Of a stretch of DNA of 64,000 bases, positions 6,248 to 64,000 are shown piece by piece (the first letter of the stretch is position 1; each line of letters starts with the position of its first letter). Under the pieces are notes generated by a model. The model had not been told where the DNA came from. It made no database searches and was given only the letters and a program-made list of their open reading frames with translations. The stretch is from Macrostomum lignano (Eukaryota), in NCBI GenBank assembly GCA_002269645.1, contig NIVC01000476.1, positions 62,001-126,000 of the forward strand. Direction: 5' to 3'. The position numbers and the translations under genes were made by a program.

Positions 6248-30105
<23,858 letters not shown>

Positions 30106-45894: not shown

Positions 45895-48609
45895 TTATTA
45901 ATATCAAGTAAAAAATTGGCTCCAAATATAAATACAACTAAATCGGAAAGAATTTTTTTAATTTTATTATGACCTACAATTGTACATTGAAATTTTCAAA
46001 TTTTTGAACCCTAAACAAAAGAAGAACCTGACTTAAATTTTAAAGTAAAGTTAAATTTACTTAAAATAATTATTCTTTTGAATTGACCTAGCTAATTATT
46101 TCAACTCGACTTCTAATTTATAATGGTTTTTATATTACCAATTAGAGGAAATAAAGCAATAGACATCACTTCATCAGCTGACGACCTAAATACGACCTAA
46201 ATTACGATGGCTAATAAAAAAATTATACAAAGTATAGTCTAACTAAAACTTACCCGAAATGACAAGGGCCTCATTAGGGCCGCATGTTTGAAAACCCCAA
46301 GGCATTGTAACTTGCAACTTCTGTACGAAAAATATTAATAAGAGTAAGACTTTAAGATCTTTAGTTCTACTCTGATGATTGTTATGATGGTCCTAACTCT
46401 CTCGTGGTCAACCCTCCTTAAAGTTTACAATGAATAAATAAATGTTGATAGTATTTCAAAATTATCTAAGTTCAACAATCGCTTTGCACAACAACAAAGT
46501 TTTCAGTTATTAGATGATTTCAAAGCCAAATTTTGAGCAAAATTCAGTTAAGAAAGGCTTTACCTATCATTTTCATTTGGATATCAACGACAGATTTGTT
46601 TTTTTATACGTTTCAAATTACATACGGCACGCGCAACCGTGACAAAGAGAACAATAACCCCAGTTTTTAGGCAGGGGGCGGATTTGAGCTCTTCTAAATG
46701 GTTTCCCATAACAAATTTTAAGGCGGTGCCCCATCTCAATGCTAGGAGCAGCTGCCCTATCCGGCAGGGTAAGCAACTTGAATTTAATCAAGTTGCCCAT
46801 GGATAGATTGATACGAGCTAACACTTGCACATTTAAGTGTAAAAGTAAAGGTGTACAAATATTTTTGGAGTTCAATTCTAGGAACATGTGGTCATTTTCA
46901 TTGTAATCTTAATCTTTATTTAATAAACCCGCTATATCTTTTTGCGCAACTCCAATCAAAAAATAGTTTTGCATGTTTCAAATTCAAATTCATGAACAAA
47001 ATGTATAGCATTTTGAAGCCTATTTATAATCTAGCGGTCATTCAATTTAGGCCTCAACGGCAGAATCAACGCGTGACAATTAAATTAAACCACCCAGCTT
47101 CCATTTTAAATGTGTGGTAAACAAAAATTTAAATGAAAAATTTGTTTTTTACTAAATTTGACTAAGTAGCTCTGCAGATGCGATGTCTTCGATCAAGGAC
47201 TATAGAATCGCATCGGCAATATAGAAAAAAGATTTTAAAATTGTTAGCTGCCCTATACTGATTCTTTCTTTCGTTTATTTACTTTTCATTAAGGGAACTA
47301 CTTTACCTAAAACTGAAGTGTGCGAAAAAGTTCTACTACAGCTACATATAAAATATAACAGACTAACACGCTGTGCATGCTAATTAAAATAATGGTAATC
47401 TTCACTGCCCAGATCAAATGCAATCATAGATTTTGTGATGAAAAAAGATTTTTTCTATCTTCGCAGTGTATTTTTTACAGGAAATTGGCCTCCAAAATTG
47501 CGCGATCTTTGCATGAGTTTTATACGTCCTGTTACTCATATACACTACAGTGGTCCAAACAAAAACCCCTTTAGTTGTCTCTCCAGAGGTCTACCTTGCA
47601 GAGTTAGTGTCATCGGGGTCTTTGAATCGATATCGTCTAAAAGCAGCCGAATATTCTCGGTTTTTTCCGAGCCAGGAATCCGCAAGCTTTCATCACTGCT
47701 CAAAACGTTTTAGACTTTCATTTGTAACAGCTACGGAATCTACATGTAAATCTAGTTATTGCTGCGAAGCTGCCAGGCCGCGGCTTTCAGAAACCAGCAG
47801 GACGAAAATCTTGAATAAAATTAAAATTTTGACAATACTAAGCAAATGGCTTCCCAAAAGAGTCAAATTCAATGTTTGCCTATCTGCGATTTGAGCAGAT
47901 CGAGCCATTTTTCTGAATTTTTAAAAGGACAGGTGATTAAGCTGGAAATTAATTAAGTAAGTAAACGAAGAGTTCTAGACTTCTAGAAGGTTTGCGCACT
48001 TTTCGCTTTATGGCTACTAAATAAAAAAAATTGCCATGGGAAAAAATATTTATTAATCGAAAAATTTGCATTCATTGTTTGAGTTCAATACAGGTGGAAA
48101 AGCTGCGGTAGGCCGACTTCGGGACTATAAAAATGTCTCAAATCTCAAGTGGGGAGATGAAATCTATAGTCAACCTTCGACTGTAACAATAACAGTTAAA
48201 AACTTACAGACATCTTATTAGCGCAACTTGAGGCTCATCTTTTTGCTGCTTCTGGTCATCGCAGCTGCTGCAGCGGTAAGTTTTCTTCATATCGGCACCA
48301 TCATCATCTGAAGCGTTGGAGAAAACAAGTTATTATAATATTATCCCTTTGATAATTAACTTTGCCAATAAAACATTTTCAGATGCCGCAAGGTCAGAGG
48401 CCGGAGACCGACTTGAGTTCTAAGCGCGACGCTGACGATTCTCCACTGATGGGGTCCGCCGGCACCGGTTCTGATGTGGCTGACGACGATAAGGACGTCG
48501 ATGAAGACGACAAAAGCGACAGGGATGCAGACAAGGATGATGATAAAGAGGAGGATGACAAAGACGATGATGAGCTCGATGAGGACGACAGGGACGACAA
48601 GGATGACAA

Positions 48610-48851
48610 ATATCAAAGTCAAATCTAGCGAGACACCGCAAGAGCTGCGGTACAACGCGGGAAGAGACACGGTCCCCGGGAGGTGAGAGAAAATACCGCG
48701 CGAAAACAAAGCAATGCGAAGGATGTGGGCGTACGCTAGCAGCAACGAACATGGCACGCCACCAACGCATCTGCAAGGACTGCTAACGACGGACCACGCC
48801 CCTAACGACTGCCCATGCCACATAAGGCGAAAAAGGGAAGAAGAAGAAGAA
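48610..48851 (+). mobile_element. Severely 5'-truncated RTE-like non-LTR retrotransposon (242 bp, 3' end only)
   Basis: Encodes ISKSNLARHRKSC..KQCEGCGRTLAATNMARHQRIC*, homologous to the C-terminus of the neighbouring element. (GAA)n tail. TSD-like flanks 48578-48609 and 48852-48883 (30/32 identical). Confidence 0.85.
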
Positions 48852-48974
48852 GATAAGGACGACAAGGACGACAAGGATGACAAGGACAAAAGGGACGCCG
48901 ATAAGGATGATGATGATGAAGAGGAAGACGAAGAGTAAGATAAGGACGACAAGGACGACAAGGATGACAAGGAC

Positions 48975-51805
48975 TTTCTTTTCTAAAAAGTTTAGAGCTC
49001 TCACAGAAGAGAAACTTCAAAGGACACTGGAAGAAATGAAGAATGAAGGGGTAGCAGATACGGAGAAAGAAAAAATGAAAGACTGGGACACACTCTCCAA
49101 GATACTTAACGAAGCCGCCAAAGAGGTGTGTGGCACAAACAAGAAGACCGCCCCAAACCCGTGGTTAATCGGACACGAAGAAGAATTAACAAGACTACAT
49201 GAAAACATTGACGCTAGAGTCCAAGACAGAAACAGAGCGGCGATATGTTTAAACGAAGCAGATTCGGACAGAGCAAGAAGAAATGGACACAGAAGGATGC
49301 AAACTGCCGCAGAGGACTTAAGAACGGCAAGGAAAGACATGAAGAACAGACTTAAAGAACTCGAAGAAGAATGGTGGGACGAGATAATCGAGATGAGTGT
49401 AGAAGCAAGCATCCGCGGAATCTCCGTGGAGTGTACAAAGCGCTTAGACGGCTAGGACAAAGGTAGAGTAAACCTAGAACTGAAACTACAATCACCACCG
49501 AAGAATTCAAAGAACATTTTGAGAAAGTCTCTAAAGATCGTTTTGAACTTAACCGTGAAGAACTTTTCAGAGTAGTGGATAAAATGCAGGACCTAAGGAG
49601 GAACAAAGAAGCAAAGGAGGCAAACAATGAAATGAACGAAGAACTAACGGAAGCAGAGATACTACAAGCGATAAAGGAAATGAGAGAATCTGAACCAAGC
49701 AAAGACGGTGTCAGAATTTGTTAAATTAAGGAAGCAGACAAAGCCACAAGAAACGAAATAATCAAAGTGGTACAACAGATGTTCAAATACAAAGCAGAGA
49801 AATGGAGTGAAAGCCTGAAAATTGGACAAATCATCCCACTCCACAAGAAGGGCGACATCAACAACCCGAACAATTACAGAGGGGTATGTCTGCTTGCAAT
49901 GGGTAGCCGCATTCTGGCGAGAGTACTCGCCACACGGCTGAGAACAGGGACAGAGAAACTTAAAATACTGAGTGAAAACCAAAATGGATTCCGTCAGAAC
50001 AGATCAATAGCAGATGCAACCCAGATCATGATACGCATCCAAGAAGATATGGAAGACCTACGAAAAAGAAGAACTCAAACAGGAACGCAGCCAGAGACAG
50101 AAGCAGACCCAGAAGCGAGACTACTTGACCTAAAAAAGGCGTACCCACGCGTCAACAAGCCGGCACTGTGGAGAATACTAAGTATACTGGGTCTTAAAGG
50201 ACGCTTCCACCAAACAATATGTAATCTACACGAAACAACGGAGTACTGCATCCGAGGAAAAGAAGAAGACAGCGAAAGCTGGCACCCGGAAAGAGGCCTC
50301 AGGGAAGGATGCCCAACATCCCCAATACTCTTCAACATCTTCCACCAAACAGTGATGCAACAAGCGGAAAAGGAAAGAAAGACAGCTGCACAAGAGAAAG
50401 GACAGACGGCAGGCATCAAATGGCATTGGATACCAGATGGGGGCCTACCAGGCGACACATCCAGACACGCCAACAACAGTGAACTGGTCGAAGAATCTAT
50501 GTCGTCCATCCTATTCGCGGATGACACAACGATCATTGGCCCAACAAAGGAAATGGAAGAGGGCATAACAACGATCAAATCCTCAATGGAGAGGTTCGAA
50601 GAAAAAATGAACGACGACAAAGAAGAGAGAGTCATCTTTGGAAGAACGAACCAAGCAGAAACCCGTTTCCTCGGCTGCTGGATAGAATCAAAACATGATG
50701 TAACCGACCGAAAACGAAGAGCACGCAGTCTATGGGGAAAAGTTAAGATCCAACTGAATAAAAAGTCGAATCAGCAAAAAGAAGCAGGCAAAAATTGTGG
50801 AAACTTGCGTTGAGAGTGGCTTACTCTTCGACTGCAACACAAGGCCTTGGTCGACCAACGAAATTAAGTCGCTTCAAAGCTGGGTGGACAAATGCTACAG
50901 ACATATCTGGAGTAACAAACGCGAGCCACCCCTGAAGCAGATGGAACGAGAACGAGTCAACATGCAAGACATAAGAAACGAACTGGAGATCAAATCTATT
51001 AGGTGGAAAATTGAAAAAAGGACCCTCGAAAGGATCGGTCACATAATGCGCTTGGAAAACACCAGAATGGTAAAAATTGCAACGCTAGTATGGCTCAACG
51101 ATCTTAAACAAATCAAGAAATGCCGAGGCAAGAAAAAGAAGACCCTCTTTTACTGGAAGAAACTACTAAAGGAAACAAGCATCGACTGGAAAAGGATCAA
51201 AGAGGAAACAAGAGACAGAAAGAAATGGAAGGAGACCATCATGAAGAGAATGAAACACCTGGAAGAGTTTGAGAAAAGGAGAGGTCATCGACACAGCGGA
51301 GAACAAACACTGGAAAGGAACGAGAAAACAGTAACCAGCAAGGAGATTATCTGCGACTGGCCCGGATGCGGTAAAAAATGTAAATCCCGAGGCGGTCTCG
51401 CAATCCACATGAAGAGAATGCATCGAGAGCAGAAAGTCACGTTTAAATGCGATATATGCACCACCACTTTCAAGAGCGAGAACACACTCAAAAACCACAG
51501 AAAAGCATGTAATGGAATTGACAGAACAGAAGAAGAGATGAGAATATGCGGAAGATGTGGCGCCAAAATTCACCGGAAAAACATCGCAAGGCACAGACGC
51601 AGTTGCTCACATGACAACACAGGAGAACCTAACATCAACAACACAGTGAGAGTCTACAAGAGGAAATGGAAAGAATGTCCGGGTTGCAAAAGAATGCTGG
51701 CGGCGACAAACATGGCTAGACACAGAAGAAATTGTGACATCGACGACCCCTAGCATCGTGGGGTGAGGCATACCCTCAGTGAGGGTGAAAAGCCTAAATG
51801 GAATG
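48975..51805 (+). mobile_element. RTE-clade non-LTR retrotransposon, 5'-truncated (no endonuclease), degenerate RT plus four C-terminal zinc fingers
   Basis: RT motifs IPLHKKGD..NYRGVCLL, QNGFR, LLDLKKAYPRV, GLREGCPTSPILFNI and LFADD; RTE-type IGHIMR..W..RDRKKW tail. Frameshifts near 49.43 kb and 50.78 kb plus stops. AATGG-type tail. TSD 48939-48974 / 51806-51841 (35/36 identical). Confidence 0.9.
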
Positions 51806-52696
51806 GATAAGGACGACAAGGACGACAAGGATCACAAGGACGACAAATGCGACCGGGACGCCGACAAGGATGACGATGAGGATGCCGATGACGATGGAAA
51901 GGAAGAAGATGATTATGACAAGTGACATATGTTCTCAATTGACAAACGACGCTAGCCTGTTGATCATGGCTGTTTGCAAAATAAATCTGAGGACCAAATA
52001 TATTTGTTGACTTTGCAATCTAAAACAAACTCGACTTTTATTGTTGGTGTTTACCTTAAGCTTTTGCTATATTGCGTTGTATAACATTCTCTAGATTTAT
52101 ACTGGGAAAATACTCGTAGCAAAGCGACACCGCCAAAATTCATTAATTCAACGTTGGGAAGCTCGGTTGAGAGCGTGTTGCGTTCTACATGTAACAGACT
52201 TTAGAACAAAATCCTACAAGAAGTTGACAATCTTCAATAAGAATATTGGCCAGTAAGCCTCTTAAAATGTAGTGGCTATATTAAAATAAATCATTTACAA
52301 ACTGATCGACCGGTGATTTACCTACAATACATCGACTTCATGGGTCTCTCCAGCTGGAAAAAAAAGCTATAAGTGCGACTTGTTTTCGTTTCATAGACCG
52401 GTTTGAAATCTCGCGACAAGATACAAGACGTCTGAATCATGGATGAATAAAGCATGGATTGCTCGTGGCCTTAAATTTAGGGGTGCAATTTTGCTCGCGA
52501 AGCCCCCGTTCGCACCCATTGGCTATTGAAGATTTCTATTTTGTCTATGGTAAAACGTTGTAAGCTGCAGTGCTGATTCATGTACAACTGCGATGGCCTC
52601 TCTTTATTTGCATATCCTGTCAAACATGCACAGAGGCTGGCTATTTGGCTCGACAACGTTGAAACAGATCGAGGACATCTAGCAAGTCCTATGTGA

Positions 52697-53241
52697 NNNN
52701 NNNNNNNNNNNNNNNNNNNNNNNNNNNNNNNNNNNNNNNNNNNNNNNNNNNNNNNNNNNNNNNNNNNNNNNNNNNNNNNNNNNNNNNNNNNNNNNNNNNN
52801 NNNNNNNNNNNNNNNNNNNNNNNNNNNNNNNNNNNNNNNNNNNNNNNNNNNNNNNNNNNNNNNNNNNNNNNNNNNNNNNNNNNNNNNNNNNNNNNNNNNN
52901 NNNNNNNNNNNNNNNNNNNNNNNNNNNNNNNNNNNNNNNNNNNNNNNNNNNNNNNNNNNNNNNNNNNNNNNNNNNNNNNNNNNNNNNNNNNNNNNNNNNN
53001 NNNNNNNNNNNNNNNNNNNNNNNNNNNNNNNNNNNNNNNNNNNNNNNNNNNNNNNNNNNNNNNNNNNNNNNNNNNNNNNNNNNNNNNNNNNNNNNNNNNN
53101 NNNNNNNNNNNNNNNNNNNNNNNNNNNNNNNNNNNNNNNNNNNNNNNNNNNNNNNNNNNNNNNNNNNNNNNNNNNNNNNNNNNNNNNNNNNNNNNNNNNN
53201 NNNNNNNNNNNNNNNNNNNNNNNNNNNNNNNNNNNNNNNNN
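52697..53241. other. Assembly gap (545 N)
   Basis: Run of N. Confidence 1.
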
Positions 53242-54440: not shown

Positions 54441-56800
54441 TGCACGAGTGCGCGCTAGCGTGCAAGAATGCCATTCCCGCATGCCTTTGCGTGCCGGAAT
54501 GCTTTTGTCTATGGAAAAATTTCACTTGTGGCTACACAAAAATCAGTGCACTGCACCCATGGAACGAATGTATTTAAACATAGTGAAACGTAGAACAAGA
54601 ATGAAATTGCAAAGTGACGATAAATTTAAACAAGTAACGCTAAGGTCAGCATGAAGTCAATATTGAGCGTAGTAGACTGCATCACATATCACTCAAATGT
54701 AAACTCCACCACGTTGCGTTCGCCGTTGGCTACGATCTTCATGCACTTCGTTAAGGCAGTAGAAACCGTCACAGTGGATGCGCCGGCGCTTGACATTGTT
54801 GTGATGACAGGCTGGTTACCAGTAGAAACCGGTGCCAAAGCAGTCTCTCTGCCACCGAACTGCACGTTGTCGCTGTCAGTCAGGGCACGTGTCAGTTGCC
54901 CGCTCATGCCTGCGACGATTGTCTCTCTCTTTTTTCCGCGACGGATGTAGCGCTCCACGGATGTGGACGACTACGAAACAAAAAATATATGGTAATGATA
55001 GTCATATTGCATGCATGACATGAATCAAAATTAGAGCAGAATAAGGACGAAAAATGCGCTGACCTTATGACCTGTGGCCTTCGCGATTGTTTCGATTGCA
55101 AAGCCGGATTCATGAAGAGTGGTAACGACCGTCGGACGTACGCAGTGGGCGGTGTACACCCTGGAGAGCTGGGCATTGGTAGAAATATTTTTCAGTAGAG
55201 GCCCGAGAGTTTGGACGCCGACTGGTTGCTTTGTGTACCACACACCGTCTGGACCGACTCGAGACTTTGGTCGCAGGAAAACGTCGCGTCCGTTCCAACC
55301 GGGAACATCGTTGATCTTGGCTTTGTAGAGCAGAAAAGCACGAACCGGACATTTTGCAGCTACTGACGTCGCCACCATCATCGCTTCCTTGTTGTCGTCG
55401 CACTCCCTCATGTCGGTGGAACCATGCACATTCTTTGATGTACCGCCCTGCAGCTTGATTTCAAACGACCCATTGGCCAGTTTTACCTGGCTGAACGACT
55501 GCATGGTGATTCCACGAACCCACTCTCTGCCCCGATTGCCAAAGTAGTATAGCAGATTGAAGTACACCTCCTCCTGAAGTCGCGACGGTGTTGCCCTGTC
55601 GAAGTATGCACTAAGCTTGATCAAGTCGTCAGACTCTATGGCCCCGTAGTGGCGGATCCGACCACCATTCTGCAAAAAAGCGTTGCAGACATACTTGATC
55701 ATCAGGTTAGCCGCATGAAAAGCTGGATCCACAATGATGTCGAGGCCACGCAGCTGTACAGTTTGTTTTGCTTAAAATATTAGAAATAGAGCAATAGATA
55801 GAGAGAGATGGCGAGAGATCTGCTCTATAGTAATAGAGCAGAATGAAGTACACCTCGTGTAGAAGCTTCGTCCCATTTGAGCGGTCGAAGTACGTCCACA
55901 GTTTGTTCAGATCGTCCTTCTCCATCGCCTCGTAATGCCGAATGCGACCGCCATTTTTTAGGAACATTCGACAAACGGCCTTCAAGGCTAAATTCGCAAT
56001 ATGAAACTTTTCACCTTCAATGATGACCTTCAATGTTAATGGCCCTGGTACGCCTGAAATACCGAAACAAGCCGGCTCGAAAGCAGATTAGACTAGACGG
56101 TGCGTAGAAGCTCCCATCCTGCTTTCTAAGAGTGGCATAGAAGAACTTCAGCTTTTCCGCAAGCTCGTCCTCAGTGCAGGATCCAGCTTCAAAGCTTTCG
56201 AATTTGTACTCTCGAAGAAATACTTGGAAGCGGGCAATAGCCGATTCTTCTTGCTTTTCGGTAGAGATGACCTTGGTCTCCTCGTCCTGTCTGTCGACAA
56301 TCGCTTGCAGTTCAGTTGTGGAACCTCCAACATCCGGAATTGATTCCGAGTCTTCACCCTCCACCAAGGGAATCAGATTGAACAGTTCTTCCAGAGTAGG
56401 TAGGAGCGGCACATCATCGAACATCGTCCGCTCGATCAACGAATTTCTGTCCATGAGCTCTACATGCTTCTCGATTTCTGCCGTAGTCAAGCCGGTTATG
56501 CAATTGTCCGGGAATTGAGACAGATGAATCATGTTTTCAAATGAACGCACACTGAGACGAACAAATATCGCGCTGTAGTGGAGAGAAAGATATTCCTTGC
56601 CTCCCTCAACCCTGTTCTTTGCAAATTGCCATAGACAAAAATGAATAGCCACTGTTGGCTAGTCTATATGATAATGTGATAGAAGCACGGCTTGCGCGTG
56701 CAACAACGCCATAGACACTCGTGCGCGTCACTATCTTTCCATTATTTTGACTCACTTGTTGGCTAGTCTATATGATAATGGCAAATGCACGAGTGCGCGC
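54441..56800 (-). mobile_element. Crypton-type tyrosine-recombinase DNA transposon (boundaries approximate)
   Basis: Recombinase gene flanked by a 15-bp direct repeat TGCACGAGTGCGCGC (54441-54455, 56786-56800) and a 12-bp inverted repeat TTTTGTCTATGG (54503-54514, 56629-56640). Confidence 0.65.
54689..56652 (-). pseudogene. Crypton/DUF3504 (KIAA1958/ZMYM-like) tyrosine recombinase, chimeric: copy A 56652-~55830, copy B exons 55753-55064 and 54970-54689
   Basis: LKFFYATLRKQDGSFYAPSSLICFRAGLFRYF, FGNRGRE, TSKN, CPVRAF, WYTKQPVG, YTAHCVRPT and TGHK|SSTSVERY motifs. 93-nt GT-AG intron at 55063-54971. Confidence 0.85.
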
Positions 56801-56885
56801 ATATCAGTCTACCAACTGGTAAGAAATCGTAGATAAAATCAAGCAAATTTTAATCCACCCTCGAAGCAGGATAGATATCAAAATC

Positions 56886-57946
56886 ATGGACCTTCTTCAA
56901 CTGTGGAATATCAACGAAGAGCCCGTTCAACGAGCACAGATGGTATACATCCAGAGAGAATTCTTTGGGGACGACAGGGACTTTGTTCAACGCTTCAGAT
57001 TGAACAGAAATACGTTTGAAGAATTGGAACGCCTGATCGGACCTGTGCTCCAGCGACAAACTCTTCGTAGCTGCGCATTGATACCTACTCAGCAAATGCT
57101 GACGGCGCTACGTTTCTACGCTACAAACTCGTATTACCATTTGATCAGGGACGCACATGGACCGTCTGAGGCAACAGTGTGTAAAGCGTGTCACTCAGGC
57201 ATGAATGATACACTATTTCAAGATGTCGTGTGCTGGCCCCAGAAAGGTGTGAAGAATCTGGCAGTGGAATTTTTCCAGCTTGGTGGAATGCCTAGCATAT
57301 GTGGCGCAGTAGATGGAACATTGATTAATATTCGCACCCCACATGAGAACGAGGCTCAGTTCGTGGACAGAAAGGGAGGACATTCACTGAATATCATGGT
57401 TGTCTGCGGACCGAAGCACCAACTTTTCTATATGAACTCCTCGTGGCCAGAGAGCGTGAACGATGTACGTGTGCTACGAAACTCCAATCTGTTTACTAGT
57501 TTCGAGCGACACGGCTTCCGCTTTTTTTCCTGGATGTGTCCTGCTTGGTGACTCAATATATCCCTGCCTTCAGTGGTTGATTCCCCCCATTCTACGGAAC
57601 AACCTGACTCAGGCAGAGAATCGGTTTAACTCAGCTCATTGCTGCTCACGCAGCATCGTTGAAAGGGCCATTGGCTTGTTAAAAATTCGATTTCCATGTC
57701 TGCGCATGTTAAGAGTCAAGGGATCCGCGTACGCCATGTGAAATCGTGAAAGCTTGTTCAGTGCTGCACAATTTGTGCATCGTACACGAGGGTGCCATTG
57801 ATGACGGTGCAGTTCTGCAGTATTTCGCTGAAATTGAGAACGTTGCGATTGGTGTCGATGGCATTCAGCAAGACTTTACGCGACGCGATCAACTCGTTGT
57901 CTTTTTCAATGAAGTTATACGCAGGATTACTGTGTCTTCTTCTTGA
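56886..57946 (+). pseudogene. Harbinger (HARBI1-like DDE) transposase with two frameshifts
   Basis: QRFRLNRNTFEEL, LTALRFYAT, CGAVDGTLI, SLNIMVVC, SWPESVNDVRV, LLGDSIYP, RSIVERAIGLLKIRFPCL and ACSVLHN motifs. Frameshifts near 57530 and 57735. Confidence 0.9.
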
Positions 57947-58197
57947 AGCTAGTTTTTCGACTTCTATTCGAATTCTTCTTGTTCTATTTATTCATCAATA
58001 TCGTTTCGCTGTGTTTCGAAAGTGTTAAGACTATAACGACAAGATAAGTAGCTCGTATATTAAACATATTAACACACTTTAAACTGCGATCGTCACATTA
58101 AACACTGCAGCGGTAATAAAAAATAAAACACAACAGCAAAACACCAGTTATATCGATCGCTCAGTCAGCGTCCCATCTGATTCCCTTTGAAGACAGT

Positions 58198-58859
58198 TCA
58201 TATTAATTGGATCAAAGCCATCTCCACTATCAGCTTCTTGTTTCTGAGTTCTAGATGTTCCAGTAGTAACTCGTCCTGCGATCCATACTCCCACCACTGC
58301 TAATCTGGCGTTTTGGTGTAGATGGAAGCGATGCACATTGCCATCCAGATAGAAAATTCTGAAGGTCTTGCTCATTCACGTCTCCAGTAAGCAGCTGCAG
58401 CATTGATGGCGTAGAACGTGACTGTACAGCAGACGGAGCACTGAGCGACATGCTCAACGCGCTAGCTGATGTGGCAGCATAGGACGGAGTATCTTTGAGC
58501 ACGGTGCTCTCAGTGACTCGCAGTCCTTGCGTCACTGGTGATTCTCTGCCTATGATTTGTAGGACGATCTCGTCTACGTCAGAAAACTCCGCTGCCTTGC
58601 CTCCAGCAGCGCCAGTCTGTTTACTGTTGTCGACTTTCTTTAGAGTCGCACTCCGCAGGTTCTTCCACGTCACGTCACGGAGATGCTGCACGGTGGCCGC
58701 ATCCGTGTATCCGTTTGCGCGCAACACCTCAATTATTTCCGACTATGCTTCCTTCTTCCGTCGGTTTCCATCACTGATGTTGGTAAAGCTTCCAAACAGG
58801 ATTTCTTTGCGCTCTAAAAGTTCGCTCAAAGACAAACGCTTCTGATCCCTGGACAGCAT
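58198..58859 (-). pseudogene. Harbinger Myb/SANT-like DNA-binding protein 1
   Basis: KEILFGSF..KKEA*(W)..LRDVTWKNLR..QTGAAGG; C-terminal coiled-coil ELLLEHLELRNKKL after a frameshift near 58290; TAG at 58745-58743. Confidence 0.82.
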
Positions 58860-59464
58860 GGCCCAAGCTCTATTGAGTCACAGTGGCGAACCAAGAAAGC
58901 TAGTGAGCTCTTTCCACTCAGAAATGGAGAAATACGAAGCGACTTTTAAGAGAAGATGTCTCGTCCCTTTCTACTTGTCGCGACTTTCGTTTTGTTTGCC
59001 TTATGGGCCGGGCCAACTTCCAAATTTGTTAGCAAGCGAGCTTCAGTCCATTCACCAAATTTTACGCACTGGTTGGCTACTTATCAACCAAGCAACATCT
59101 TTTATCAAGATGTAAAATCTTCGTAAATCGAAATTGTCAGCACTGGTAACTGATAGGCTACCGGTGATAGGCCCTGGGACCGATTTCATGAGCAACTGGT
59201 AACTGGTAAATAACCGCAGCTACTTGAAGTTTGGTTTCATGGCGAACTTTAGCAGCTGCTAACTATTAGCAGTCTGGTGAGCTGTGGTTTCACGAATTGA
59301 CTGGTAAAACTTGTATTGATTTAGAACGTCTATGTCTATGGCTCAAAGTAAGATATGGTGTTCTCGGGGGTTGGTAACGGTTGGTTTCAGGAGTATACCA
59401 GCGCTGCTAAAATAACCACATTTTCCACGGTTAAAACTTAGCATCCTACTTAGGTGTCTAAGAA

Positions 59465-60491
59465 ATGGAGCTGCCTATATACGACGCCCTTAATTTGCTC
59501 GAAGAGGAACCTGGGCCGCGTCCAAGGGAATTTCGAGAGCGCATGAACTTCGTCGAGGACTGGGATTTTAGACAGCGCTTTAGAATGTTGCCACCTACGT
59601 TCGAGCATCTGCTCGAACGAATTCGCCCAACCTTGGAGTATGGTAGCGTTCGAAGAGGTCAATTGAGTGCCAAGGAGCAAGCGTTGACCGCATTGCGTTT
59701 CTACGCCTGTAACGGCTTCTACCACGTACTTCCAGACGCACACGGGCCTTCCGAGTCGCCTGTCACAAGAGTTGTGCGCCGCGTAACGACTGCCATTAAC
59801 TCTGAGCTTTTTCACCATACCGTTGCTTGGCCGGACATCAACAACGTTGTGCAGAAGTTCTTTAACATCGCAGGAATGCATTCTGTCTGTGGACTCATCG
59901 ATGGGACCCTTATTCCCATTAAGAAACCTGGACTTCACGAAAACCAGTTCGTGGACCGTAAAGGTCAACACTCGTTGAACGTGCTTCTTGTGAGCGGACC
60001 AGATCATTAATTTTATTACTGCAACGCATCATGGCCGGGAAGTGTAAGCGACGCAAGGGTGTCTGTTTACACGTTTCCAGATGGAGCAATGGCGTCCAAT
60101 CCCAGGAGCCGTCATACTCGGTGACAGTATTTTTCCTTGCTTGGATTGGTTAATACCACCTGTTCTAGGCGACAATCTGCCTCCAGCAACCGCCGCATTT
60201 AACAGGGCTCAAAAGAAGACGCGATCAGTCGTAGAGCGCAGTATCGGACTGCTAAAATTGCGCTTCCCCTGTCTCAATGGTCTGCGCGTTCAAGGTCCTG
60301 CTTACTCTGCTGAGATAGTCAAGGCGTGTGTTGTTCTGCACAATCTTTGCATTCAACTCGAAGGACAAGTTGACGACAATTTGGCAGCAGAGCTTTTGCA
60401 TCCGATGGTGGGCATCGATATACCCATGGAGGGCGAAGTAGTGAACGCAAACGACAACCGGGGGAGACAACTTATTGAATTATTCCAATGA
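59465..60491 (+). pseudogene. Harbinger transposase 2 with a premature stop and a frameshift
   Basis: RQRFRM, LTALRFYAC, CGLIDGTLI, SLNVLLVSGPDH*FYYCNASWPGSVSDARV, ILGDSIFP, TRSVVERSIGLLKLRFPCL and ACVVLHN motifs. TAA at 60008-60010. Confidence 0.9.
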
Positions 60492-60709
60492 CTAATTTCA
60501 ATCGATAACAGAAACTAACTATTGAAAAGCATGTTAAAGAACAAATGTTAATGTTAATGTTAAACGTTTATGTATGCAACTTTTGCGAACACAGCGTTAT
60601 TCAATTTTAATCCTGTCATTTGTTTGAAAGTTAAGGCTTTTAAATTAATTGATAAACACTGTTATAAACACTGAAACTAATAAACGCGTGAATAAATGAT
60701 GCAACAAAT

Positions 60710-61400
60710 TTAAACAACACAATGCGTTTTTTGGTGTTCATTCAATCTAAATAACAGCTTTAGCATAGTACGAGCTATATCATCTTGCTGCTCGAGTTCA
60801 AGTTTTCGGATTTCCAGGCGCAGCTTTTTGTTGCGTAGTCGTAGAAACTCGAGAACCAACTCTCCTTTTTCCGTCATCTTCTCCGGCTTCCTTCGACGTG
60901 GGGTCGATGGCGCTTCGCCTGCTACGTCGCTGAGCAGGGCCAACATCGAAGGCCTGGCCATGGATGGCTTTTCCGCCGAGCTGCTAGGCATAGTACGGTT
61001 TAAGTTGTCTATATGGACAGATGCATCGGAAGCGGCATCGGGTCTTCGGCACACTTTCTTCGACATCAAGCCCACATACCGAAGGACTTTCCTTTCCAAT
61101 GACTTCTAGAACCATACGATCCACATCTGTCTCCTTGGCGAGAGTCCCTCCTCCGGCGCCCGTCTGACGACTAGCGTCTCGCTTCTTCATTGTTGCCATC
61201 CGAATATTTTTCCACATTGTGTCGCGCAGATATGCAACTGTCTTGCACAACCCATTTGCCTCCATCGTGGTTCGGATTTCCTCCCAAGTGTGTCGCTTTT
61301 TCGATTTGGCTTCTGCGTTATCCGCAAAACTACCGAACAAAACGGCCTTTTTGTCTCTCATGCGAGACAGAAAGAGGAGCTTTTGTTCCGGCGTGGACAT
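60710..61400 (-). pseudogene. Harbinger Myb/SANT-like DNA-binding protein 2
   Basis: KAVLFGSF..KKRHTWEEI..LRDTMWKNIR..QTGAGGG; frameshift near 61050 leads into ELVLEFLRLRNKKLRLEIRKLELEQ. Confidence 0.85.
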
Positions 61401-61680
61401 GGTTGTGCACTTTTAAAATCTTTTCAGTTTTGACTTCTAAGCTAGCGAAACTAGAGCCTTATATACTACCCGCTCCTTCTCTTTCTCCTTCTCCAACTCA
61501 GCTTCTTCTTCAGCTGCAAAACGCATGTCTATGGCACGAATTCTATGCTAGGGAGAATAGCAGTACTGATATTTACTAGCAGATATTTACCAGTTCCTTC
61601 ATGAAACCAGATTTTAGCAGACTGCTGAATATCCGCGGTAATTTTAGCTGCTGCTAACTGGTAATTTACCAGTCGCTCAT

Positions 61681-61852
61681 TGTAGTGACTGACGCGAGAG
61701 ACAGAAGTTTAGATGAACCAAAAGCTTATGGCCCCGACTTGGGCGTGGGGTGCGATTATATATTTGAGCTCAAAGCTCTGTAATCGATTGCTTCGATTGA
61801 TTGACAGGAGTTAAAATCAACGTGCCGAGAAAGGGGGGGGCAGAGTACAACA
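61681..61852 (-). mobile_element. 3' LTR (172 bp) of a Ty3/Gypsy element, with adjacent polypurine tract
   Basis: On the minus strand the LTR starts TGTTGTA and ends TACA. PPT GAAGGGGAAAGA at 61864-61853. Confidence 0.85.
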
Positions 61853-61965
61853 TCTTTCCCCTTCGCGGAGATTAACGGATTAAAATCGGATTTAAAAAAA
61901 ATGAATGTCATGCGCAAAAAAGCAAAAAGAGGTTTATAGGTTCGTCAGTTTATGCACGAAAAAAA

Positions 61966-64000
61966 TCAGGTCCTATAATTAGGTTGCGGTAATTTGCAGC
62001 TTCTTGGATGCGGACGGTTCGCGATTGGCAGCTCCCCCGCACCGGCTGCGGCCGGCGGCTCCGCGGGTGCCGAAGCGGCCGTCGGGTCGCCTTCTGGACC
62101 GCCGGTCTCGTCTGGTCCGTCTCCTGTTGGCCGCTCTGGCAGTCGCTTAACGTTGCTGGCGTGGCGCATGCAGTTGCTGCCGCCCGTGCTCTCCAGGATG
62201 ACAGAATCGCCTTTGACCTCCGTGACTGTCCAAGGCTGAATTTCAAATGGCGTGTCCGTTTTCGATGGCTGAATTTTTCTGCGGATGACTTTATCGCCAG
62301 CTTGGATGCGATGCTCTGCGGCTGATCTTGTCGCGTCGGCGTAGTGCTTCATGGCGGCCTTGTACTGACGGTCTCTGTTCCTGACCGTCTTTGCTGCAGC
62401 CTGCGGCTTGACTCCTGCAATGCAGTCTTGGACTGGTCTCCCGAACATCAGGTCGGCTGGGGCGACTCCTGTGGCCGTGTGCGGAGTGCTGCGGTACGCG
62501 GCGAGCCACTCCTGCAATGCCGTCCTCCAGTCGGTTCCTTGGGCGTTGGAGATGCGGAGCAGCTTGTTCAGGGACCTGTTGATTCGCTCGGTAATGCCAT
62601 TGGCCTCGGGATGGTACGGTGTGATGCGCCGGTGGCTGATTCCGTGGCTTGTGACAAAACTTCTGAAGGCTTCTGATGTGAATGTCGGACCGTTGTCCGT
62701 CACGATTTGCTGGGGAATCCCGAAGGTCGCGAAGACCTGCTGTAACTGTCTGGTGGTGCGGTCAGCTGTGATCGACTTCATCGCCACGACGATGGGGTAG
62801 CGCGAGTAGTGGTCTATGATCACCAGGAAATGTCGACCGTTGGCAGGTCCAAGAAAGTCGATGCCGATGGTGGACCAGGCAGACTCTGGCAGCTCAGTCG
62901 GTTGCAGTGGGGCTGCCAAAACTTCCGCTTGATGGTTGGTGGCCGCACATTCCAGGCACTGTGCCACCAGTTGCTTGGCCTCAGCTGTCATTCCGGGCCA
63001 CCAGACCTTGGAGTTGAGTCGGCGCAGTGTTTTGGTCTCGCCTTGATGTCCTTGATGAGCCAGCTGCAGGACAACGGGCCGCTGGGCTTTTGGGATTACC
63101 AATCTTTGGTCTCGCAGCAGAACACCAGAAGCCTCGTCAACTCGTGCCTGGCGGCGTGCAGTCGTCGGATGCTGTCGTCCCGCAGATCCCAATTGCCTGT
63201 TCTCAATGATGACAGCACAGTCGATAGAATGGCATCACGGGCCGTGGCTTCCCGGACTTGCTGCAGGGACAGGCCTCTCGGCGTCGACGCTTGCGCGATG
63301 CTGCCGATGAAGTTTGTGTCCAGGATCTCGCCGATGTTGATCGATGTCGGAGCGGGCTCTGGCTGCCGGCTGAGGATGTCGCTCGGGTTGAACGGGCCTG
63401 GCCGATAGATGACACTGAACTGCATGTCCTGGATGCTGAGCGCCATGCGCTCGATGCGTGGAGGTGGGCGCGAGCCGGGCTTGAGCATGAAGGTCAGCGG
63501 CTTGTGGTCGGTGGCGACAGTAAAGTTGGCGGCGCCGCTGAGATAGTGTCGAAATTTCAGGCAGCCGAACTTGATTGCGAGAGCCTCCCGTTCCGTCTGT
63601 GAGTACCTCGACTCGACTGCCGATAGGGCTCTGCTTGCGAATGCAACCGGCTTGGATGAGCCGTCGGACTGAATCTGGCAAAGAATGGCGCCGAGTCCGA
63701 TGGGGCTGGCGTCGACAACGAGTTCGGTATGCCGGTGCTTGTCGAAGAAGATCAGTGTGCTGTCGACTGCGATGCGATCTTGGACTTCTTGAAAAGCCTT
63801 GGCCTGCTGCTCGCCCCACTGCCAGCTTGCACTCTTCTTGGTCAGGTCCCGCAACGGCTTCGTCATGTCCGCCAGGCCTGGCATGAAGCGACTGACAAAC
63901 GTAACCAGACCGAGGAAGGAGCGGACTTCCGAGGCGTTCGTTGGCTCTTTGAAGCTTTTGATCGCCGACACCTTGGCTTCAGCTGGCTGGATCCCTTTTG
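61966..64000 (-). mobile_element. Ty3/Gypsy pol (end of RT, RNase H, integrase), one frameshift near 63140; runs off the window
   Basis: EVRSFLGLV, LVVDASPIGLGAIL, YSQTEREALAI, TDHKPL and ADxLSR-like SDILSR motifs; HHCC (HQGH..CLEC); DDE (GIDFLGP, VTDNGP, NGITERINR). The domain order RT-RH-INT is that of Ty3/Gypsy. Confidence 0.95.

Follow-up and report, generated by a model that had tools for sequence, protein, structure and literature searches.

A 64,000-nucleotide stretch of Macrostomum lignano DNA (contig NIVC01000476.1, positions 62,001 to 126,000, hereafter the window) contains a gene for an aspartate (Asp)-rich protein whose 3′ coding region is interrupted by two long interspersed nuclear elements (LINEs), which we term E1 and E2. 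Coordinates are those of the whole stretch, and all features of this locus lie on the plus strand. The host gene (48222-48609 and 51806-51985) comprises a putative upstream exon predicted from the sequence (48222..48275), which is flanked by an AG acceptor and a GTAAGT donor and encodes a hydrophobic stretch resembling a signal peptide (RNLRLIFLLLLVIAAAAA); a start codon was not located for it. The left part of the Asp-rich exon (48383..48609) was delineated as an open reading frame (ORF) with the translation MPQGQRPETD...DDRDDKDDK. The resident 3′ end of the coding sequence, U2 (51806..51925), was recognized from its translation, lies beyond both insertions and closes with TGA (51923-51925), and an AATAAA polyadenylation signal follows at 51980-51985. 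The gene resembles one for a small secreted, extremely acidic protein with repeats rich in Asp, Lys and Glu, and a Pfam search assigned its product to no family.

E1 is a 242-bp 5′-truncated LINE fragment (48610..48851), identified from its translation, the alignment of its C-terminus and the fold of its 3′ untranslated region (UTR). It encodes just the final 58 codons of the element, including two CCHC zinc fingers, up to a TAA stop at 48784-48786, and ends in a 65-nt 3′ UTR (48787-48851) with a hairpin and a (GAA)5 tail. E2 is a 2831-bp 5′-truncated and decayed LINE (48975..51805), delineated from ORFs, Pfam matches and homologs. At its 5′ end, alignment to a 1292-residue relative (P0001) starts at residue 374, with approximately the first 363 codons missing, and because the alignment begins there E2 lacks the 2A-like motif and the apurinic/apyrimidinic endonuclease (APE) of that relative. 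The remainder encodes a reverse transcriptase (RT, ~49842-50684), a post-RT region and two C2H2 plus two CCHC fingers (~51349-51750), with Pfam matches to RVT_1 and zf-C2H2. Decay is evident from at least two frameshifts (near 49455 and near 50800) and an in-frame stop at 49722-49724, with possibly a second in-frame stop shortly past the first frameshift. A TAG stop (51751-51753) precedes a hairpin-containing 3′ UTR (51754-51805) and the tail AAATGGAATG, which is (AATGG)2-like.

The segment between the elements, U1 (48852..48938), consists of a 36-mer (copy A, 48852-48887) and 51 bp of Asp and Glu codons closing in TAA (48888-48938). The 36-mer is present three times: it recurs as copy B (48939..48974), the left target-site duplication copy of E2, and as copy C (51806..51841), the right duplication copy, after which 84 bp of Asp-rich codons lead to the host TGA. 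Copies A and B are identical at 36/36 positions, and copies B and C at 35/36. Excision of each element together with one duplication copy, as a reconstruction of the pre-insertion state, yields an unbroken Asp-rich reading frame.

The 3′ junctions of the two elements fall between 48851 and 48852 (E1) and between 51805 and 51806 (E2), and the same 27-mer, GATAAGGACGACAAGGACGACAAGGAT, lies directly 3′ of both. An initial annotation of the window had proposed that two diverged elements were inserted at the same target sequence with long duplications, and our analysis bears out both points with small corrections to the coordinates. The E1 duplication (48578..48609, GATGAGGACGACAGGGACGACAAGGATGACAA, against 48852-48883) is identical at 30/32 positions and the E2 duplication (48939-48974 against 51806-51841) at 35/36. 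The E1 duplication is the less secure of the two, with ambiguous limits, and represents the best of several registers because the host tract has a period of 9 bp: other in-register 32-mers reach 24-28/32, and 14- or 23-bp duplications give 86-87% identity. The E2 duplication is unambiguous since it adjoins the element on both sides and similarity ends at both outer edges.

E1 and E2 belong to different families, as the initial annotation also held. They share 55% identity over the final 58 residues and differ in both 3′ UTR and tail, and blastn detected neither nucleotide similarity between them nor additional copies of either within the window. A tandem duplication of a single insertion is ruled out on these grounds. 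The data support two independent retrotransposition events by diverged families into the same target sequence, and for two unrelated insertions to have a junction sequence in common within ~90 bp of the pre-insertion DNA is far beyond chance.

The initial annotation had noted neither the threefold 36-mer nor the relationship of U1 to U2. U1 aligns over its whole length to U2 (48852-48938 against 51806-51925) with four indels that are all multiples of 3 and with aligned stop codons; outside the 36-mer, ~16% of aligned positions differ, and blastn reports ~80% identity. U1 therefore looks like a paralogue-like copy of the 3′ coding end of the gene. We interpret U1 and U2 as the ends of two paralogous genes because both diverged copies kept the frame, a pattern that a decaying UTR copy beside a coding copy would not give. 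We prefer, as a proposal short of proof, that E1 brought U1 along by 3′ transduction, that is, as the flank of an E1 source copy residing in a paralogue; a tandem repeat within the host exon is the alternative. Transduction would have involved read-through transcription of the E1 source copy and priming at the GAA-like end GAAGACGAAGAGTAA. The source paralogue would then end in ...KRDADKDDDDEEEDEE followed by a stop codon, with an E1 copy upstream of GATAAGGAC, and the same sequence would have been hit three times, not two. With either origin of U1, each element entered at GATAAGGAC.

These features could also be read as the product of local rearrangement in the absence of any target preference, through tandem duplication of the gene end, gene conversion between paralogues or one complex template switch linking an E1 read-through RNA to E2. 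Such an origin would account for U1 being a diverged copy of U2 that includes the stop codon, and for copies A and B matching at 36/36 positions when the remainder of U1 and U2 differs at ~16% of positions and by four indels; this local identity amid divergence means that some homogenization or transduction took place. Yet two different families each adjoin the 36-mer, and each still had to enter there or in a paralogue. A 3′ transduction adds a third hit and removes none, the E2 duplications are clean, and the same stacking of elements occurs in GAY (Y, pyrimidine) repeats of an unrelated genome, as described below. We therefore consider rearrangement a very unlikely source of the shared junction.

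To place the elements, we compared them with their relatives. The conceptual E2 protein has 292 homologs at ~45-53% identity (~50% over 99% of the query). Most derive from assemblies of marine metagenomes or from host-associated ones; one is from Branchiostoma belcheri. Full-length relatives are single-ORF proteins of 1250-1310 residues with the order 2A-like motif, APE, RT, a post-RT region with a GHxxRM motif, two C2H2 fingers and two CxxC...HxxxC (CCHC) fingers. The NPGP motif occurs as TIHPNPGP, TIEPNPGP or VEKNPGP; in P0001 it occupies residues 47-54 upstream of the endonuclease and reads TIHPNPGP, with His for the usual Glu. The two C2H2 fingers C-terminal to the RT are matched by Pfam zf-C2H2 in E2 and in its relatives and are aligned among them, and a domain search of the family returned no match to RNase H.

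When 1.84 billion representatives were searched with a profile, the group ranking directly below the family comprised proteins of 1400-1650 residues. Those examined contain APE, RT and Cys/His fingers, several with RNase H, and in two of them (P0226 and P0232) the aligned RNase H falls precisely between the second and third fingers of the family. This position indicates that the family derives from a lineage with the layout APE-RT-finger-RNase H-finger and lacks its RNase H. Among Protein Data Bank (PDB) entries, the family profile finds only remote matches to L1 ORF2p (~61 bits over 730 residues), and no R1Bm or TRAS1 endonuclease chain is among the best 60 of 93 matches, which argues that the family is not close to R1 or Tx1. 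BLASTP comparisons with the C-termini of Bov-B and of chicken CR1, each using an approximate query, gave no significant match.

The predicted architecture is accordingly Ingi/Vingi-like (I group) and not that of RTE, the clade named in the initial annotation: the 1250-1310-residue relatives, the 2A-like motif, the four fingers and the RNase-H-bearing outgroups all depart from that assignment. This I-group placement draws on domain layout and outgroups. Alignment scans with the C-terminal region recovered six loci in metagenomes, one in prokaryotic genomes (a probable eukaryotic contaminant) and none in viruses. A decayed LINE of the clade (L022; CBDHFQ010000038.1, 227180-237908) lies on a 353-kb contig filed as a Bacteroidia metagenome-assembled genome, which is most likely eukaryotic contamination of a bacterial bin.

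The 3′ ends of these families share a compact organization. Their 3′ UTRs span ~17-70 nt and end in short repeats with units of 3-5 nt, which are (GAA)n, (AATGG)n, (AAGAC)n, (CCAGA)n, (TAGTG)n or (CAAGT)n depending on the family. Most families that we folded, including both window elements (48787-48851 and 51754-51805) and loci L002, L009, L010, L016 and L020, form a two-tier structure, a hairpin nested within an outer stem with an internal loop of GAAA(A) on the 3′ side, and the tail follows directly; this fold is not evident in L025. Stem sequences vary among families, which suggests compensatory change. Short interspersed nuclear element (SINE)-like elements found beside the LINEs have the same 3′ fold.

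The conserved fold followed by a short repeat marks the true ends of the elements, and since the flanks beyond it differ, the Asp-coding tract is flank and not tail. The initial annotation had allowed that this tract, which it described by its DDK codons, might be part of the elements' own 3′ tail, a candidate that is ruled out by the shared hairpin and repeat ends of the relatives.

With the ends defined, the flanks of relatives can be compared. The most informative set is the P0119 family, which is 44% identical to the C-terminal region of E2, carries a (GAA)n tail and is present in one HiFi assembly. Each of its six independent loci is embedded in a GAT-type repeat, always in the same orientation, and the duplications measure 12-13 bp, so that the same repeat, a single orientation and duplications derived from the repeat are found together. 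The duplication reads GATAGAAGTGGTG at L009 and GATGATAATGAC at L023, both flanks of L024 lie within a (GAT)n tract, the 3′ flank of L004 (the same site as L005) starts GATGATGGTGATGG, and the N-terminal read-through peptides of two further family members (P0126 and P0130) are poly-Asp. At the 13-kb locus L023, GAY-rich DNA is confined to the ends of elements and always lies on the sense strand of the element. At L003, whose tail is (CCAGA)n, the 3′ end is likewise followed by GATGATGATGG.

SINE-like elements of ~140-330 bp with (AAGAC)-type tails lie inside the (GAT)n tracts of these LINEs (L009:730-1057; L023:6025-6165 and 10355-10677; L024:1-79 and 4347-end). The resulting SINE-repeat-LINE-repeat-SINE stacks at P0119 loci mirror the way in which E1 and E2 are placed about their common 36-mer.

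To compare flanks across families, we scored the 42 nt immediately 3′ of each element by the number of GAY codons in the frame richest in them. E1, E2 and L003 scored 5-14, as did three SINE-like copies and three of the four P0119 loci included; the background probability of a score of at least 5 is 0.0055. The fourth P0119 locus, L004, scored 2 since its GAT-type flank is short. Other families scored 0-3. The common denominator of the targets is GAY-rich, GAT-repeat-like DNA, which is broader than the (GACGACAAG)n tract named in the initial annotation. The broader preference is probably real in this clade, and judged from flanks and phylogeny it appears lineage-specific, patchy and not monophyletic.

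Several observations weigh against a general GAY preference and temper its extension to E1 and E2. Unrelated 3′ flanks occur in P0018 (6 copies), P0013 (2), P0099 (2) and P0031 (3), and in P0023, P0105, L022 and L025 (one copy each), so that the correspondence of flanks among relatives that the initial annotation led one to expect holds at the six P0119 loci and fails in several other families. In a rough neighbor-joining tree the targeting families are scattered, and the nearest neighbors of E2 show no preference. The duplications measure 32-36 bp in the window versus 9-13 bp in relatives, and flanks on short-read metagenome contigs may be chimeric. The databases searched yielded no additional copy of either family, leaving one insertion each of E1 and E2: the 58-residue E1 peptide gave no match as a query, and no relative closer to E2 than 53% identity was found among proteins. 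The specificity of these two families themselves thus rests on one locus, and as neither element retains an endonuclease domain, neither informs on the determinant of targeting.

A monophyletic targeting sub-lineage was considered and is ruled out by the scatter in the tree. One of the P0031 copies sits in a GAA-rich tract, and L025, on a short-read metagenome scaffold, has a GAT-rich 5′ flank. L010, a copy of the otherwise non-targeting P0018 family, has short GAT runs in both flanks; its 5′ flank (L010:1-60) reads AAGGATGACAAGGATGACAAC, resembling the window target, and its 3′ flank contains runs of ATGATGATGAT.

The initial annotation tentatively ascribed target choice to the zinc-finger array. 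R2 recognizes its target through zinc fingers, and by analogy with its N-terminal fingers the elements could form a strictly site-specific RTE-clade lineage that reads (GACGACAAG)n through the array. The identical junction sequence in two families would fit such a mechanism, as would the resemblance of the C2H2 fingers to those of CTCF and Zif268 and a weak match to the R2 finger region. However, the architecture and nearest outgroups are unlike RTE, targeting relatives enter (GAT)n-type DNA and not GACGACAAG, and several families of the clade have unrelated 3′ flanks. Alignment of the finger helices revealed no residue separating targeting from non-targeting families, the helices being as conserved in the latter, and the homologous fingers of the Trypanosoma cruzi element L1Tc act as a sequence-independent chaperone (PMC5814959). 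We give little credence to recognition of a strict site by the fingers. Because the helices are alike and the L1Tc fingers bind independently of sequence, the C-terminal fingers are more likely to be a nucleic-acid chaperone or an RNA binder than a target reader. By analogy with Ingi/L1Tc, we infer that the endonuclease is the likelier determinant of the target.

The junctions themselves bear on how insertion proceeds. In the window, both first-strand nicks map to one position, 5′ of GATAAGGAC on the sense strand and after ...GTCCTTATC on the bottom strand, and the second-strand breaks lie 32 and 36 nt downstream, so that the junction there is fixed. Overall, duplications are regular and orientation is strict. 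At every junction, the next tail unit and the target overlap by 2 nt (GA), the tails being otherwise unlike the target. This overlap may help priming.

A preference that is real could also be set not by the endonuclease but by annealing of the tail to nicked target DNA, or by fragile or structured GAY repeats that capture LINE cDNA with no need for a sequence-specific nick. The GA overlap at every junction, the (GAA)n-tailed P0031 copy in a GAA-rich tract and the identity of (GAA)n with (GAT)n at 2/3 positions are in keeping with such a process. Nevertheless, elements with (GAA)n, (AAGAC)n, (CCAGA)n and (AATGG)n tails are all found at GAY-rich sites, whereas (GAA)n-tailed copies of P0031, P0023 and P0105 are not. 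Regular duplications and strict orientation further favor ordinary two-nick target-primed reverse transcription. Tail annealing or repeat fragility is in our judgment an unlikely basis for the preference.

We favor an explanation in which two families of this clade, sharing a preference for GAY-rich targets, hit an Asp-rich gene, and we assign it as a whole a probability of roughly 60%. The endonuclease would nick the bottom strand after ...ATC within GAY-rich DNA such as (GAT)n or GATAAGGACGAC, the freed end would pair with the GA of the tail, and the RT, docked on the hairpin, would start synthesis, with a second nick 12-36 nt downstream. By this route, target-primed reverse transcription would have struck the last exon of the secreted Asp-rich protein gene on at least two occasions. 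The coincidence of the two junctions would reflect the same GAY preference, met here in a coding Asp repeat and not in a microsatellite.

The domain layout of the family has a close parallel in Ingi elements (L1Tc of Trypanosoma cruzi and ingi/RIME of T. brucei), which like the family have a single ORF with a 2A-type motif, APE, RT and two C-terminal C2H2 fingers. L1Tc encodes 2A, AP endonuclease, RT, RNase H and two C-terminal C2H2 fingers, its fingers show sequence-independent nucleic-acid binding and chaperone activity, and the relative site specificity of L1Tc/NARTc and ingi/RIME has been attributed to the endonuclease (PMC5814959). The published L1Tc target pattern covers a 12-nt stretch past the cleavage point, near the 12-13-bp duplications of P0119, and Ingi elements have non-autonomous partners that share their ends, as here (PMC5814959, PMC3708506). 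In contrast to the family, which has no RNase H and ends in a hairpin and a short tandem repeat, Ingi/L1Tc carry RNase H and a poly(A) tail. The L1Tc target motif also differs from the GAY repeat, and the likeness to Ingi rests on layout.

Vingi elements, compared here by description, are like the family a single-ORF, RNase-H-less relative of an RNase-H-bearing lineage. Kojima et al. reportedly described Vingi in 2011 as an Ingi-related clade lacking RNase H, and we know of no target preference in it. Vingi ORFs encode ~1000 residues in elements of ~3.1 kb, against 1250-1310 residues in the family. Vingi also has non-autonomous, SINE-type derivatives that share LINE ends, as here (PMC5786205), and the 2A motif was not found in it (PMC3708506).

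Insertion in one orientation into simple repeats and stacking in one tract are shared with Kibi and Koshi (Tx1) and with Waldo and Mino (R1), whose targets are (TC)n, (TTC)n, (ACAY)n and (AC)n. These elements belong to other clades, and their tails usually copy the target repeat, whereas the tails of the family differ from the target. RTE elements (RTE-1, Bov-B) resemble the family in being APE-type, in their very short 3′ UTR with tandem repeats, in a GHxxRM-type motif and in their SINE partners, but their proteins of ~1000 residues contain APE and RT only, to which the family adds the 2A-like motif and four fingers. In the Crack clade (CR1 group), also compared by description, Crack-15_BF is reported to have the same Glu-to-His change in its 2A-like motif (TIHPNPGP here), and one member of the family comes from Branchiostoma belcheri; the post-RT region of the family is not CR1-like. 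To our knowledge, neither zinc fingers nor RNase-H-bearing outgroups are features of the CR1 group. In Crack-15_BF of amphioxus, the Glu-to-His change in the 2A-like sequence is associated with very low recoding activity (PMC3708506).

The surroundings of the locus are rich in repeats and mobile elements. Positions 1-42000 of the window consist almost entirely of tandem repeats with dozens of unrelated units, for example (AGAC)x373 at 12202-13690, (TGTC)x172 at 15262-15948, (CTAT)x875 at 20286-23782 and a 15-mer x81 at 24234-25449, and the composition changes sharply to AT-rich DNA near 42 kb. A 545-N assembly gap (52697-53241) lies ~770 bp downstream of the host stop codon. Further mobile-element ORFs occupy 55031-63971: a tyrosine-recombinase-like ORF (DUF3504/Phage_integrase; 55031-55732, minus strand), Harbinger-type DDE_Tnp_4 pieces (56886-57551 and 60081-60491, plus strand) and RNase H and integrase of a long terminal repeat (LTR) retrotransposon (61966-63971, minus strand). 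The best public relatives of this integrase are only ~44% identical, the one named match being from Hydractinia. An Rfam search of the window identified no RNA family.

A literature search, with Repbase outside its scope, found no report of a LINE that targets (GAT)n or GAY repeats. If our reading is correct, a GAY-targeting Ingi/Vingi-like lineage would add both a clade and a target to the repeat-targeting non-LTR elements. A wider proposal, which we hold tentatively and at slightly less than even odds, is that an undescribed guild of RNase-H-less, Ingi-like LINEs with a 2A-like motif and four C-terminal fingers, together with their SINE-like partners, would nick GAY repeats one-way through the endonuclease, pile up in (GAT)n tracts and invade Asp-rich coding repeats in several marine-animal genomes. 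Sister families with the same fingers and 3′ hairpin, some targeting and some not, form a natural comparison set, and the contrast between them could map the residues by which an APE-type endonuclease sets sequence choice. In M. lignano, a "safe-haven" preference for microsatellites would have spilled into a coding Asp repeat and disrupted a gene, and such elements could recurrently mutate acidic repeat proteins.

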